A stretch of DNA of 64,000 nt. It comes from Eutreptiella sp. 'Long Island Sound 2002'. Taxonomy: Eukaryota; Protista; Euglenida. Positions 5,443 to 58,400 of this stretch are shown here, in pieces. The notes beneath the pieces were generated by a model that was given only the letters and a program-made list of their open reading frames with translations, had not been told where the DNA came from and made no database searches. The translations under genes were made by a program, and so were the position numbers. Positions within the stretch are counted from its first letter, which is position 1. Every line of letters begins with the position of its first letter. The stretch is from assembly GCA_964036045.1 (NCBI GenBank), contig OZ038378.1, positions 145,638,001 to 145,702,000 on the forward strand. Direction: 5' to 3'.

Positions 5443-5622
5443 ACACACACACACACACACACACTTGTGCAGGAACCAAACGATAAGACCACTGTTACTT
5501 AACACGAGCACTGCGGATCGGATGGCACCCAGAACACCTCGTCAGGCCAATGAGCAATCAAAACAGCACAAAGCAGGGCAAAGCATTGAAGCTGTCATGA
5601 AGTCATAAGGCTAGGCGCCTTT
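5443..5622 (-). mobile_element. Short (GT)n-tailed retroposon, copy C
   Basis: Minus strand CAG|AAAGGCGCCTAG...TTTGCCCTGCTTTG...CCTGACGAG...(GT)n. Confidence 0.5.
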
Positions 5623-5791
5623 CTGCAATGATACAAGAAACAGGGTACGGGACTGTTTGATATCATCCGCAAGGAGTCACAGGCAAAGAATCAGGCACCC
5701 TGATCGTGTATCACTAACCTAGGAGGGGAAGAGAATGACACCGGACGTCGCAGCAGTCCTTTCATGCCCAGGGAACCCTGTTGACACACAC

Positions 5792-23606: not shown

Positions 23607-25711
23607 GTATGCCCTCATGTCTGTGGGTCTGGCGTGTGTTGCCCCCCGGCTGCTTCCGTGGACCATTGTCTCGTCGCGTTGCGCATATCTGTCATTCATG
23701 TGTTGTGGGTTTGGGCCCTGGTTTTTTGTTTTGGGGGGGCTGACACACATGTGGGAAGTCCAGGCAAAACAGTGGGACGGGTGCCGGGTTCCCTCGCGCA
23801 GCGACGTCCATCCCTCGGAAGGCCCACGCAACAACAGTAACAGCGTGCCATCCTGAATCGGCCGGTGAGGCTAGTCACAGGATTGGTCTCGCCAGGACCG
23901 GGGGGGGCTTGGCATGACGCTATGGTGTATTGTTCTCGTCTGCAGCCGGCGGCGCCTACTGGCCGATCGCCACTCGCTGCCCTTCCCTCGGACCCTTTCC
24001 CTCGGTCGGTTGTGCCAACCGGGGGGGGGGGTCTCCTTCCAGACCGAAAGGCGCCTATGGTACCACTGATGAGGCTCTTGTTTTGATCTTGCACGTCTGC
24101 CTGTCCCCACCAGACAGCAACTCAAAAAGACTCCGTACGGGGGGGTGCCTGCGCTTGTAAGCCCCACCTGAGGTTCCGGCAAGGCCTCCGCCCTTTGATT
24201 GATCCACTGCAACCCGTGCATGGCAGTGGTCTAGCAATTGACCATGGGTGGCACCGGTGGTGAATAAGCCACCCCTGTGGATTGCTATGCCAATGCGGCA
24301 CAGGCCAGCTTCTGTGCGAAACGAGAGCAGTTTGAAAGCCAGCGTCACGTCCTTTCTGTCCGGCTGTGACTGCTCGAGGCCGGTGGTGTCCGGGAAGTAC
24401 AGTTTTGCGGGTCAAAGCCGAACGCCATTCCAGTCCCATTGCTCAACATGCCATCACTGCCCCGTGGTGCCCGCTCCCCTGCAGTTGCCGGCAGAGGCTA
24501 CACATGCATGACCATGAATTCAGAGGGTGCACGTGGCCAGCGCTGGTGATGTGCCCAGTGAGTGGCCAGGGAATTCCGGGGTGCTGGGCCAGGCATTGCA
24601 CCCTGGTGTGAGCCGGAACGGGCTGGCAAGCGAGGCACTGCGGCCATGCGAGAGGGCCGGGGACCCAGGGGGGATTGGTGCCGTAAGGGGGGGTGTAAAG
24701 TAGGCCAAACAGTTTTTTCACTGAATACAAGACAAATGATGCCTCTGACTGACTGACAATAATATTGAGGGTTGCATCAAGTGTTGTACCCCTTCAGTCA
24801 AGAAAAAGATGCTTCAACAACCGAGCCCCCAGCGCGGGGGGGCGCGGTCCAACCATCCCAGTCCCCTCCACGCCCTCTCTGGACCCTCGGGCTGATGACC
24901 TTGGGGCCTTGAACCACCACGACCAGACCGGAACAGGGGTGGGTGGTGGGTGTATGCTCACCTGATTGGAGCTTGAATAGAATCATCAGAGGCACAGCAA
25001 CGGACCCATACCCTCGGATCAAGAGGAACATCTGTTTGGGATCCACAGCACTGATGGCTCGCAGGGTTCTTACCATGTTTGGCTGACTGTTGGGTTCAGA
25101 GGACAGCAGCAACGGGGGCGGGTGGGTGTTCCTTGGGCCAATGTGAGGCAGTTGCTCCCGCGGCAACTGCGACGCGACGTGTCAAGAACTGAAATGGTGC
25201 GCGTCACGCTGACCGTGGCAGCTGGGCGTAGCACAGATTGGAGCGGCTCCCCTGTGTCCCCGCTCCATCCATCCATCCGGATAGAAGCATGATACTCATG
25301 CTCTCTGGCCCAGGTCAATAGCTGTCTGATCCGTGGGATTGATGACGTACGGGATTCTATTTTCCCCCTGGAGCTCGGTGCCGAAGGGAGGCATTGTAGC
25401 AGGGCGGTCTGAAAGGGTCTCCTTTTTCTCCTGCGCCACCTGTTTAGGACCGTCGGAGGGGCAGTCAACCCATGGAAGTTTGCAGTGCAGGTGGGAGTTT
25501 GGCGGACGGGATCCCACTGAGTCAGTCCATATCTATTCACACCATCAACCGTTTTTCATCCAATAGGGAGGGCCATAGCCATGCGGCCAGCACCCGAAGG
25601 ATATCCAGTGCATGTAGTCGCCATTGGATCCCGCTTTGTCCTCCTGCTTTGACGCTCCGTTTGTACCTTCTTCTGCCCGCCTGCCCGCATTTTGGCACCA
25701 TTTGTTCGCAG

Positions 25712-53111: not shown

Positions 53112-53424
53112 CAGTGATGTATTACAACGGCCGTACACCGTAGGAGGAGGGGGGTACCCCCCCGACCCCCCCTACCTCCCTCCCCTTGGACCCCCCCTCC
53201 CCCCCCCCCTCCTCCTCTTGTAATGTTTGAGGCTGACAGCCAAAATTTTGCTTCGGCACCTTCGGTGCCAAGAGGATTTACGCTTCAAATTTTTCGGCCC
53301 CCCTTCGGTGGGGACCATAGGGGGACCATAGGAGGAGGGAGGGTCCGGCTGAACCCCCTCCCCTCCCTCCCCCTTCAGACCCCCCCCCCCTCCCTCCCCC
53401 CCCCCCCCTTCTAATACTTCCCTG
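53112..53424. mobile_element. MITE family A copy, hAT-like ends
   Basis: Ends CAGTGATGTATTACAA / TTCTAATACTTCCCTG; flanked on both sides by the 15-bp direct repeat cccctcaccctaccc. Confidence 0.75.
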
Positions 53425-53610
53425 CCCCTCACCCTACCCCCAGGGAGTCATCACCCAGCCTATGTGGGATGCACGGCACCGGGGCAGGAGTCACAGGATG
53501 CGCACGGCCCTCGGGAGTCACCCCTGGGCCAGACCTCCTTCTTCTCCTCCGGTGTAGACTTCCTTTCAGGTGCGTGGTTGTGTGTGTCGGGGGTGCGTGC
53601 GCGCGTGCGT

Positions 53611-53635
53611 CTTTCTGAGTGGCTATTTTTTTTCG
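53611..53635 (+). other. Relic euglenid spliced-leader sequence
   Basis: CTTTCTGAGTGGCTATTTTTTTTCG vs the Euglena SL ACTTTCTGAGTGTCTATTTTTTTTCG (24/25 over the aligned part). Followed by AAAGG rather than GT, so not an SL RNA gene. Confidence 0.85.
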
Positions 53636-53753
53636 AAAGGCGCCTAGTGTAGGCGGGACATGCTGCCTTTGTTCTGCTTTGCACCTGACGAGATCTGGTG
53701 CACTCAGGCCGCCTTTTGCTGTGCCCTGTTTGTCGTGTCGACCGCGTGTGTGT
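53636..53753 (+). mobile_element. Short (GT)n-tailed retroposon, copy D (SL-capped)
   Basis: AAAGGCGCCTAG...CCTGACGAG...GTGCCCTGTTTGTCGTGTCGACCGCGTGTGTGT; similar to copies A and C. Confidence 0.6.
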
Positions 53754-55229
53754 CTGACTGATCCTACCCGGATCCTAACCTGAACCGAACCGTCAGCCAA
53801 TTATCAAAGGTGGCCATCTATGTTGCTGGGTTGGTGATGGTGGGCATGATTGGCTCTGCCTCGTATGTCATGCGCCATGCCTTTGCTGCCACAGTGGGGC
53901 GTGTTTCACAATATCCAGATACCTCGTTTGGGAAGGTCCCACATCTTCGCCAGTCGTGCTGAAAAGCGCCCCAGTCTCTATGCAAACGGTGATATTGGTG
54001 CCTTCCAATCAGGCAGGAGGGGCTAGAGGCTGCACACCGTGTGCCTGTGCATCCTGCCATGGCTGTATCGTCACAGGATGCAGGGGACCGGGCTGCATCA
54101 TACTGTGGGGCCTGCCACGGATGATGATATGACAGCAGAACACTGGCGAAGCTGGCTTTACACTCCCTTCATCTTGTTTCGAGCAGATTTGACCCTTTGG
54201 CCAAGGGGCCACGGTGGGGCTGTGCCTCCTGGACCTGGGACTCCCTCCACCTGGGCCTCTTCGCTTTTCAACTGCTTTGGGGGGGCGCAAACGCAACCTT
54301 CTGGAATGGATTTCGTTTATATATTCTGACCATCAAAATGACTAAAACACTTGTGTACAAGTTGTGTTACACCCTGTTTGCATGCTGGTTTGCTTGCAAG
54401 GAGCGTGAAAGGGGGGCGTTGGGATGCAGACCTAGACCTCCTTTCACCCAGTCAGAACATCCTCCCCCCCCCCCCCAACCGTGGTTCTATGGAAAAGTGA
54501 TGGATTTAGCTCATCCTCGCTATGTGTTATGTCCGCTACCACATCACTGTGTTGGACAATCGCAGCATTGGACAGCTCTGATCCTTGATTCTGAGAGTTT
54601 CTGGAGTGCCTTCTGGTGAGAGGGCTTTGCCAGCTTACCATGGCCTGGACCAAAAAAACAACAACAAAACTCAACAGGCAGATTGTGTAAGCATTCTTCC
54701 CTGTAAAGGATAAACTACCTGGGTACCCTAGGTAGAAGGCCAGAGGCTGATCGTAGGCTAGGGTCAGGACTGAGTTCAGTTCCGTCATGACTGATGGAAC
54801 CGGCAGAAATGAATTCGCGCTTTACAAACTCAAGTCCCACATGCTGCATTGTACACCAGGTGTTTGGACACGACTGGATAGAAAATCCTTTGCTGCTTAG
54901 AAGCCTCACTGCAGCATCACAAACCGCAATGGTATCACTGAAGAATGTCGGTTCCAGGCCATTTTTTCTGTTTCACGATTTCAGCCACGCCATTTGCCTT
55001 CCCCCCTGGATTGCAGCTGCCCTCCACACCGGATCATGCCATCGAATGGTGCAATGAACTTTTGGGATGCACAAAATCGAATGCAAAACTGGGACCAGGA
55101 GACATGAATTGTTGCATTGTTCCGTCTGTGGATAGCTGGAGGCTAAAGGAGAACAAAATCAAGGCAAAATATAGTCAACAAGCGCGGGGATGTAAGGTGG
55201 AAGTACTGGAGCGGTGTGCAGTGCATGTT

Positions 55230-55445
55230 GTGTGGGATGCAGTGCACGGGGAGCACAGCGATAAGCCGCCGCGATATTCGTTTGATTCAGCTCACCGCCA
55301 CATGTCTCTCCCTGACCCCACCATTGTCATCGGGGACCTGAATGCCGCCCCTACTGCAGACAACCACAAAGGGCCAGCCACGGCCACCGACCTAGCTCCA
55401 CATGCACCACAACCTCTGGATGCGTCAACAAGGCACCACACCTAG
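55230..55445 (+). pseudogene. Decayed AP-endonuclease fragment of a non-LTR retrotransposon
   Basis: PTIVIGDLNAAP matches the APE GDxN motif; downstream frames contain stops. Confidence 0.6.
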
Positions 55446-58400
55446 AGCACGCAGCTGTGCCCTATACATGATGCCACCAAAATTAGAATCAAGCCTACTA
55501 GGCGCGTCTGCAGGCTGCAATTCAGCTGGAATCTGGTGCACCTGGTCCACCAGACCATGTTGGTGCAAAAGTTAGATAATTGGTGCAACAGGGACTGCTG
55601 GTGCCACAGCCAGATACACGCCCGGGATTATACAAGTTGGGACTATGGCCCAGTGGTGGGGGGGGGGTTGGATACTAGAGGAGAATTTGCCCATTGTTTG
55701 TTGTGCTTTGTATTGTGTGATCTTGTGTTTGCCTCTGAGGGTGCTGACCGCGCGGTGCGCGCGGTGCAGTGTCAGCCCGGCGCGCACTAAAAGTTGCTGA
55801 AACGTGGCCAGTGTGCACTGTGTGCAATGGTTGGGTGATGCTATTGGTGTGCATGGGTAAAGCACACTTTGGGGGCATTATCTGGGGGGAAGTGGTGATC
55901 ATGCATGCACAAACGTTTCCCATTTCAATGTATTTTCTCCGCGTCCCTGACCACCTTCCGAAAGGTTGTACATTGCACTGAAGCGTTGCATCCTCTGATG
56001 CCTGCGGTGCGCGCGGTGCAGTGTGCGGTGTGTTTCAGCACCCTCTCTTTGTGCCTTCCAAACAGGGGATCACACATTCGACTGCTTTGTACGGTTTGTT
56101 GAGAATTTGTTTTATCCCCGCCACCTACCCACCCCACCCGCCTTTTGTGCAGGCGTACTGCTGCGAGATGGGTGATGATCAGTGCGTTGTGGCATTCGTG
56201 TTTTGTTGACATTGTGCAATTGCTTGTAGGTTGTTTCCTGGCAATTGCTTGTGGGTTGTTTCCTGCCCCGTACACGGATATTGTTGTTACCGTGGGCATG
56301 TCCAAGTTTTGATTTAGACCACTGCGCCTTGGCCCGTGTGTTTGCACTCATGTATTGTTTTCATTTGTGGTCATCAAGGGAGGGGGGGGACTTCATGTTG
56401 TTGACAGGTGGTGGCGTCGTGCCTGTGCTTTGCACTGTTTTGCCCGTGGGCCTCGCCCAAAAAGGTTTCGGAAAACCGCCGCCTCGTGCCGCCCCAATTT
56501 TTCTCCTTTCACTCCTCAGCAAGCCGTGGGCCCGTGTTGGTCTCCCTGCCCTGCGTCCATTTGCACCGCTCCCCTTGTGCGCACTGTACTCTCGGCCGTG
56601 CTGCGCCCCCAGGGCCCTCTTTCGGGCTTCCTACCCTGCCCCCATGCCTCCCCACTGCCGCCCTGCTGCCCCGTGCCCATATTCCCTTCTCCTGTCGGCT
56701 GGCTCACCACACGCTCTACACCACCCTGCTTGACCCTCCTCCCTAGCACGCGCACCGACGCCACATAGTCATTCTTTCTGCGCTTTGTGTTCGTCAAGTT
56801 GGGTGGCCGGCGCGGGTGAGGGGGTCCTGAGGCCACCTGTGGCGGTTCGTCGTGCGCGGGGGTCAAGGCCCGCATACCACTGTGCCTTGCAGCGCACGGT
56901 GGTTGGGTAACGCCAAGGGCCCTCAGCCGAGGCTCTGGTGATCCCCGCCCAAGGGGGATTGTGTTGCCTATAGTTGGGGCGTGACCAGCGACTTGGAGGT
57001 CCACCGGGAGGGGTTAGGTGGGGCCAGGGTGGGGTCAACCCAGGAGGTCCTCGTTGTCCTTGTCAACCATGGCCTCGAGGTCTAGGGCCATGTTGAGGTC
57101 CACGACCTGCACGCGGGCAGGCTCCTCTGTTTGCGGGTAGAGGGCCTCCGGCTCGTCCGCTGGGAAGCGCCTCGGATGCCCATAGGGAATGCCGTGCACG
57201 CAGTGCGCGTGCAGTGCGAAGTTTAGGATGTGGCATATTTGAGTTGTCAACCATTTTTGCCCATTTTCAACCATTTTCCCCTATTTCCTCCCCCACATGG
57301 GCGTTAGCGCACGGGGTGCGTGCCGGGCATCTTTGAGGGAGCGTTATCTTGGCCCTTCAACCTTCCGGTACTATTGAGGAAACCGGGCCAATTATCCAAT
57401 TCACGCTTTGTTGCGTGGCCCCTTGAGTTGGGGTTAGGGACTCACAATCCACGCTTTGTTGCTCCCAAGGATGCATTTGAAGAGAAGGATGCATTTGAAG
57501 AGCAAAACCAATGTGCAAGGTCCGAGCAATACAAAGAAACGATGATGCGAATGTCAATGGGATTGTTGTAGGAAGTAAACAATGTGTTGCGGTCCGTTGC
57601 ATTGCACCTTTGTATGCGTTCATGCCTCACCCATGTTTGTTGCCAAATGTCAAACGGGCACCCTGAGCCTGGTATGTGGTGATACAACTTCAAGGTGTCT
57701 GCTGCGGAACTGCTGTATTTCGTGCTATGTTTGTAGAACACACATGCCATGTGACCTTATGCCCGGAACCTCCGCCGATGTTACATGTGTGCATCTTGCA
57801 TGCCCTTGCATAGTTGTACTTTACAAGGCTGGTTTGCTTGTTCATAGCGACAGTTGATTACCAAGTTGAAGGTAGTTTCGTTGTTCTCATGTGGGCTTTG
57901 CTGCTTCGCCGTGCTACGAGACAGGTGAGAGGTATTCTTGGGTGAGTATCCGAGCCTCTACGTGCGCAATATGCACGCAGTGCGCACGCAGTGCAAGAAC
58001 TTCCCCATAGGAGCCCCGTGCGGTGTGTGACCTGCTGGGAACGTTGGAGGGTGTGGCACTCAAACAGGGCACACTTTGTGCCCCCCCCCCCCCCTCCCAG
58101 CACCAGGCTCCCCTGTGATTGTTCAGGGCGGGTCACCAGTGTGTCATGCAGGCGTCCCCAGTGAGGGCCGTTCTTCTTCCACGATGATTGGACCGTCCAA
58201 TGATTGCAAACGGGTGTTCAATGAGGCATCCGTTGCGCCGTGGTGCCATGCAGAGGTCCATTTTGAGGTGAAAATGAGCCATTTTTCAAGCAGGTTCAGG
58301 CATCATGTGCTCCATGCCCCCCCCCCCCCCCCGAACACGCTTTAACCAGTCTCAGCCCCCAGCCCCCTGCACTGTTGTCTGTTTTTCTACAAACTAATTC

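Follow-up and report, generated by a model that had tools for sequence, protein, structure and literature searches.

A spliced leader joined to the 3′ module of a Eutreptiella retroposon family: a probable retroposed copy of a trans-spliced RNA

Introduction

Retrogenes tagged with a spliced leader (SL) were reportedly described in dinoflagellates by Slamovits and Keeling in 2008. Dinoflagellate genes with a DNA-encoded SL at the 5′ end are interpreted as SL-tagged retrogenes (PMC5585692, PMC6050394, PMC12014239). They represent the closest published parallel found for the locus described here; in the literature searched, SL-tagged retrocopies were encountered for dinoflagellate genes, and neither for euglenids nor for the 3′ module of a mobile element itself. 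The same literature, in which absence is no proof, yielded no description of Penelope-like elements or of SL-capped retrocopies in Euglena.

Other described systems bear on the locus as well. Non-autonomous retroposons can be mobilised in trans via a shared 3′ end, as in SINE/LINE partnerships and microsatellite-tailed elements, and the U6-L1 chimeras of mammals are template-switch products of a non-LTR reverse transcriptase. In trypanosomatids, the elements SLACS, CZAR, and CRE1 insert into SL-RNA genes, and the SIRE element of T. cruzi donates trans-splice acceptors. Chlamys and Naiad, Penelope-like elements with an N-terminal GIY-YIG endonuclease, show a strong insertion bias for microsatellites, (CA)n included, where target-site duplications are unreadable; canonical hammerheads are said to be missing from this clade, for which trans-splicing is not reported (PMC8557442). 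Hammerhead ribozymes of Penelope-like elements and of retrozymes are known from Cervera and de la Pena (2014, 2020; cited in PMC8557442).

Structure of the SL-bearing copy

The DNA analysed (the window) is a stretch of 64,000 nucleotides from contig 1 of the 2.28-Gb genome assembly of Eutreptiella sp. 'Long Island Sound 2002'. On its plus strand, positions 53,611-53,635 correspond to positions 2-26 of the 26-base euglenid SL and match it at 24 of 25 bases, the sole mismatch being a G for T at 53,622. The SL-RNA genes of the same genome, which read SL and then GTAT...CGCTCC, were used as the canonical reference, and they bear out the statement of the initial annotation that such genes continue with GT. 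In the window copy, which carries 25 of the 26 SL bases, this GT is absent along with the SL-RNA intron: the leader ends with its exon (...TTTTTTTTCG), AAAGG opens the body, and the letters at the junction are tC TTTCTGAGTGGCTATTTTTTTTCG and then AAAGGCGCCTAG without a gap. Rereading of 53,611-53,635 agreed with the 24/25 match and the direct joining to AAAGGCGCCTAG that had been proposed. When up to three mismatches were allowed, the SL 24-mer occurred once in the window versus 0.00 expected, and AAAGGCGCCTAG with up to one mismatch occurred five times versus 0.17 expected.

Directly 5′ of the SL lies a degenerate G/T-rich microsatellite (53,571-53,610, plus strand; 75% G/T in the 24 bases before the SL), presumed to be the remainder of a (GT)n target site. 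The SL is followed on the same strand by a body of 110 bases (53,636-53,745), the 3′-terminal module of a retroposon, and by a short (GT)4 tail (53,746-53,753). The body contains the conserved CTGACGAG core at 53,685-53,692, which consists of a hammerhead-like CUGANGA plus G. A divergence of 6-7% from the nearest relatives indicates that the copy is not young. It is, in our assessment, very probably the retroposed cDNA of a trans-spliced RNA.

A short-read contig from run X1 spans 53,421-53,694 with no differences, taking in the SL together with the unique flank on one side and part of the body on the other, and indicates that the junction is no long-read chimera; X1 may, however, be the source sample of the assembly itself. 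This bears on the possibility that the copy is an artefact, i.e., an assembly or cDNA-contamination chimera, or a single event spread by DNA-level duplication. The highly repetitive genome and the uncertain independence of X1, the best DNA match source, leave some room for it, but the X1 contig crosses the junction unchanged, at least 27 contigs carry the exact junction, which recurs between differing flanks at no fewer than 90 places, and SL length and T-run variants vary among the copies, making such an origin exceedingly improbable.

The RNA libraries, consisting of assembled contigs that cannot show 5′ ends, contain both the family and the window locus. Their contigs cover 53,427-53,641 and 53,706-54,370 with no differences, and the unique stretch 54,680-55,600, covered by the DNA-like run X1, has no RNA-library contig. 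The locus probably belongs to a transcribed region. The contig over 53,427-53,641, from library X4, includes the non-SL flank and represents read-through transcription or carried-over DNA of the locus, not mature SL-RNA. Contigs 100% identical to window 53,427-54,370 were present in the estuary metatranscriptome runs X4, X6, and X7, suggesting that this habitat is home to the organism or to a strain very close to it.

Other family copies in the window

Four further family copies were located on the minus strand of the window. The first, an AG-type copy of another subfamily (5,465-5,625), has its CAG acceptor at 5,625-5,623, its body at 5,622-5,465 with the core at 5,545-5,539, and a (GT)n tail at 5,464-5,441; its body and that of the SL-capped L033 are 97% alike. 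The second AG-type copy (1,660-1,762) consists of CAG followed by AAAGGGGCCTAG with a mutated core, and a 70-base (GT)n at 1,659-1,590 comes after it. In both copies, a pyrimidine-rich tract and CAG were found where the SL would sit, in line with the acceptor that the initial annotation had suspected at this position. The third copy (1,461-1,576), preceded by (TG)n GCG and located inside the (GT)n tail of the second, is 5′-truncated at or near the junction and may be of either type. The CG before it had been taken for the last two SL bases; as it is indistinguishable from a microsatellite variant, it was discarded as evidence. Among the 100 genomic CG-type copies listed, (GT)n directly before the CG was seen in only one. 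The fourth copy (1-74; AAAGGTGCCTATTGG... CTGACGAG) runs off the start of the window and is preceded by CAC, not CAG.

Genome-wide distribution and position of the junction

What can be read directly from the assembly is the products themselves, with the number of copies, the exact joins, and the flanking sequence; all match counts given here are lower bounds. The 21 bases of the SL 3′ end were present at at least 3,608 places (control, 0); at at least 1,476 of them (control, 0) GT follows, a number inflated by a repeat family in which the SL is followed by GTGTCTTTTTGTCC, beginning with GT. More than 2,100 genomic SL 21-mers have no GT behind them, and SL-RNA genes made up only 8 of the first 30 SL places, the others being SL fused to various repeats. 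The SL 3′ end plus AAAGGNGCC, i.e., the exact SL-body junction, occurred at at least 90 places on contigs 1-27 and three small ones (control, 0), in many subfamilies and with different flanks. A scan of metagenome contigs for the same junction gave 0 matches, to which little weight is attached.

AAAGGCGCCTAG was found at at least 3,590 places (control, 45), preceded by AG at at least 2,268 (control, 1) and by CG at at least 694 (control, 3). In the AG-type copies, the AG closes a pyrimidine-rich tract exactly at the position of the SL-body junction. Among the first 100 listed of the 694 CG-type places, approximately 28 were SL fusions with T-run variants (5 to 9 T, or point changes), approximately 55 read CAG, then ACCTTTTGCG or ACATTGGCG, then AAAGG, and six had the SL fused to AC..., not AAAGG. 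Extrapolation from these 100 places suggests approximately 200 SL-capped copies genome-wide, T-run variants included, or approximately 5% of the family.

In the ACCTTTTGCG and ACATTGGCG subfamilies, the AG is placed 9-10 bases further upstream, and since the SL is fused to the first bases after the AG there as well, the junction follows the AG. This shift is the strongest single argument for trans-splicing, both against an inherited SL head (discussed below) and against template switching, in which a reverse transcriptase that had begun on the unspliced RNA of the element would have moved over to an RNA bearing the SL. Template switching is established for non-LTR reverse transcriptases, and SL-RNA and SL-capped mRNAs are abundant. 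However, such jumps would join at variable positions, and a jump onto SL-RNA would put its 3′ intron part next to the element, whereas the observed joins always connect the exon end to the first base after the AG, following the AG when it moves. Template switching is therefore considered very unlikely.

An identical 21-base upstream context (GCTGTTCTCCACAG ACATTGGCG AAAGG) was common to many copies, four of which are spaced at approximately 1.85 kb at G000:C1:156621272-156626876. Copies with this GCTGTTCTCCACAG context look like a young subfamily, possibly in tandem arrays.

Retroposon character of the family

Among 30 sampled SL-capped copies, 24 kept 24-26 bases of the SL and the others were 5′-truncated within it, and in 25 of the 30 the 24 bases before the SL were at least 80% G/T. 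The upstream (GT)n was the tail of a preceding full family copy in only 1 of 30, a test that heavily truncated predecessors escape. On the 3′ side, a GT run of at least three units started at a median of 117 bases after the junction in SL-type copies (present in 27/27) and 118 bases after it in AG-type copies (35/37). For the window's subfamily, there were 736 first-look candidates, of which the 40 scored were 89-93% identical over all 117 query bases (the body plus the first 7 tail bases).

In related copies, the same body was found behind polyY-CAG, and the conserved 5′ region ends in the pyrimidine tract and CAG. Many copies are 5′-truncated at differing points with (GT)n immediately upstream. 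One long copy (L081:205-1618) begins right after (GT)n, and four other long copies start aligning there. The element unit in the window's subfamily is approximately 1.4 kb, its last 100-160 bases being the body, which ends in the (GT)n tail. Within this long form, a 215-base segment (L081:714-929) alone matches many other places at 74-75% and is possibly a repeat in its own right, which the element either shares or carries nested within it.

No long ORF was present in the long form L081:205-1618. In addition, for seven AG-type copies from other subfamilies, the ORFs lying upstream contained no retroelement Pfam domain, and neither reverse transcriptase nor GIY-YIG, the sole Pfam trace being one sub-threshold EF-hand match. 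The window itself holds no intact retroelement ORF, its three longest ORFs giving only a weak F5/8 type C match, and a GIY-YIG scan of the genome detected candidates in long open frames, none of them near the listed family copies. Furthermore, an Rfam search of the window copy and of 20 longer copies reaching 200-250 bases upstream of the junction gave no match to a SINE head (tRNA-, 7SL-, or 5S-like). The constant 3′ end, variable 5′ truncation, and simple-repeat tail are those of a target-primed retroposon, and the truncation, the (GT)n tail, the landing in (GT)n, and the lack of an ORF indicate that the family behaves as a non-autonomous retroposon. The target-site duplication is unreadable because both flanks are (GT)n microsatellite.

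Recurrent origin of the SL-capped copies

SL-capped copies turn up in many of the body subfamilies. Of 28 such copies, at least 7, the window copy included, had an AG-type copy as nearest sampled relative (0.90-0.98), compared with 0.77-0.89 for any other SL copy. Even near-identical SL-capped pairs differ in flanks and SL lengths, indicating separate insertions, and insertions with differing flanks were observed in several lineages. These relationships indicate that SL-capped copies arose recurrently.

The alternative would be that the SL head was inherited, one ancestral SL-body fusion or SL-RNA-gene head having founded a self-propagating SL-headed lineage. The mutual identity of 97-99% within the SL-capped groups L034/L045/L051, L037/L040, and L041/L049 would fit such descent, as would other families of the genome that begin with the SL in all sampled copies. 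Against it, SL copies are scattered among subfamilies with AG-type copies as nearest sampled relatives, they form only the small minority of the family estimated above, they have no upstream sequence able to drive transcription, and the junction moves with the AG in other subfamilies. An inherited head is accordingly regarded as unlikely.

The preferred reading, i.e., retroposition of a trans-spliced RNA, would proceed as follows. The source would be a non-autonomous retroposon family with a pyrimidine tract and CAG inside the element before the body. The element transcript would be trans-spliced at this internal AG, and the 26-base SL would replace everything upstream. A reverse transcriptase supplied in trans would recognise the 3′ module or its (GU)n tail, use a nick in a (GT)n/(AC)n microsatellite for priming, and copy the short RNA up to its capped 5′ end; the resulting order would be (GT)n, SL, body, (GT)n. 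From these products, we infer a mechanism of target-primed reverse transcription, together with the enzyme and an RNA intermediate.

The initial annotation had proposed that the window copy was transcribed, trans-spliced, reverse-transcribed, and reinserted, and this is supported by the exact junction at the places counted above, by AG-type parents that carry the acceptor, and by the tracking of the AG by the junction. Its further proposal combined two parts: the trans-spliced RNA of a mobile element is supported, but no sign was seen that the family must cycle through trans-splicing, given that the SL-capped minority has lost the acceptor and the upstream part. For the same reasons, the SL-capped copies are read as by-products, not as the propagating form, and most likely they were dead on arrival.

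SL fused to other sequences in the genome

Several unrelated repeat families also begin with the SL and, together with the abundant SL 21-mers that lack GT, this indicates that retroposition of SL-capped RNAs is general in this genome. The family with GTGTCTTTTTGTCC behind the SL (L012, L013, L015, L016, and L029) contains a 486-aa open frame without a Pfam match. At L008 (G000:C1:440227-443247, minus strand), the SL is followed by an A and a hammerhead-like string (CTGATGAG, a GGCC hairpin, GAAAC), and behind that string lies an open frame of 461 aa that contains an OTU cysteine protease domain. L010 and L020 have the SL joined to a repeat whose 445-aa open frame contains a C-type lectin domain, possibly an SL-tagged retrogene family. 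Moreover, three SL units stand in a row at L011 (G000:C1:1041249-1044269, minus strand, near 1500), namely a full SL, AC plus an SL with one change, and the 18-base stump AGTGTCTATTTTTTTTCG; this row resembles a stack of relics left by successive rounds of trans-splicing and retroposition.

Hammerhead-like core at the acceptor

The core region shows a fixed order: G|AAA at the junction, the 8-base palindrome AGGCGCCU, an A, and a hairpin closing directly on CUGA(C/U/A)GA. Among 96 copies, the core letters were CTGACGA in 74, CTGATGA in 17, and CTGAAGA in 5. The letters of a hammerhead core, i.e., CUGANGA, GAAA, and a cleavage triplet NUH, are all present, and helix I lies next to the core with covariation support from the same 96 copies, many of which are close kin. 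Pairing at its positions 1-3 was 0.97, 0.98, and 0.95, versus 0.87, 0.75, and 0.49 with shuffled partners, with compensatory changes at position 2 (C-G 48, U-A 40) and position 3 (C-G 42, G-C 41). By its motif order, the module would be a permuted hammerhead, helix III of which would need a dimer.

For helix II, the upstream sequence of the element offered no contiguous pairing and the SL no more than 1-2 pairs, and anti-SL or cis arms directly after the core were at background level. No Rfam hammerhead match was obtained at E up to 1-10 for the window copy, longer copies, or the variant module described below, and the fold was not unusually stable (z-score, -0.31). Because neither a cis nor an SL-based helix II was found, no Rfam model matched, and the folding energy was ordinary, the module is not filed as a ribozyme. 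A box C/D snoRNA reading of UGAUGA...CUGA was also rejected, with no match reaching the gathering score in the window and only chance-level snoRNA matches, located off the module.

A variant module is located at 24,047-24,073 on the plus strand, comprising CCG, AAAGGCGCCTA, the palindrome TGGTACCA, and CTGATGAG. The palindrome between AAAGGCGCCTA and CTGATGAG is a second loopless one, a GGTCT...AGACC hairpin and the CCG lie before AAAGGCGCCTA, and an Rfam search of 24,047-24,073 gave no match. In addition, the bodies of many subfamilies contain short ATG-started frames of 8-13 codons that end at the TGA of GGCCTGA; as these frames overlap the helix I hairpin, they may be a side effect of pairing.

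After SL joining, a C-G closing pair of helix II is possible in 95% of the copies versus 2% before. We give little credence to the idea that trans-splicing would be a working step of the element, in which the acceptor G would be G12 of a permuted, dimer-forming hammerhead core and the SL would supply the C; if true, a split ribozyme would be activated by the leader of the host, or processing of the element's RNA would be changed by it. For the window's subfamily, the tests described above lend no support to a ribozyme completed by the SL. In a weaker version, the thousands of AG-type copies may provide host genes with trans-splice acceptors that are already made and scattered through the genome. 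The finding provides a natural test bed for any function of the hammerhead-like core at the acceptor.

Implications and comparison with known systems

On the preferred reading, the SL-capped copies form a genomic record of euglenid SL-bearing RNAs having been reverse-transcribed and reinserted, in which the unspliced parent and the spliced product of one element coexist in thousands and hundreds of copies, respectively. They would mark functional trans-splice acceptors without recourse to RNA data, and they suggest that some reverse transcriptase in this organism acts on short RNAs via a 3′ end with a (GT)n tail and has (GT)n microsatellites as its targets. Furthermore, the process helps to explain how a 2.3-Gb genome came to be filled by SL-bearing repeats, the SL copies outside SL-RNA genes numbering more than 2,100.

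Like non-autonomous retroposons of the SINE/LINE type, the family is short and ORF-less, with variable 5′ truncation, a simple-repeat tail, and thousands of copies; unlike them, it has no tRNA-, 7SL-, or 5S-like head in the copies searched, and its short form is also made by trans-splicing at an internal acceptor, not by 5′ truncation alone. Insertion into microsatellites is shared with Chlamys and Naiad, and the present genome has GIY-YIG domains in long open frames, but no ORF for a reverse transcriptase or GIY-YIG was linked to the family. With the hammerheads of Penelope-like elements and retrozymes, the core has in common the CUGANGA, the GAAA, a palindromic short helix III needing a dimer, and a core-adjacent helix with compensatory changes. 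It differs in its permuted order, in the lack of a detectable helix II and of an Rfam model match, and in a GAAA that begins with the splice-acceptor G.

As with SLACS, CZAR, CRE1, and SIRE, a mobile element of Euglenozoa is here tied to the SL system. In contrast to SLACS, CZAR, and CRE1, however, the copies are found in microsatellites rather than in SL genes, and they carry the SL, up to its exon boundary, at their own 5′ end. Dinoflagellate SL-tagged retrogenes agree most closely, as in both cases a DNA-encoded SL at the 5′ end marks the reverse transcription and reintegration of a trans-spliced RNA. Those retrogenes are protein-coding and often bear stacked truncated relics, whereas the Eutreptiella sequence is the non-coding 3′ module of a euglenid mobile element, with (GT)n flanks and with acceptor-bearing unspliced parents still present in thousands of copies.
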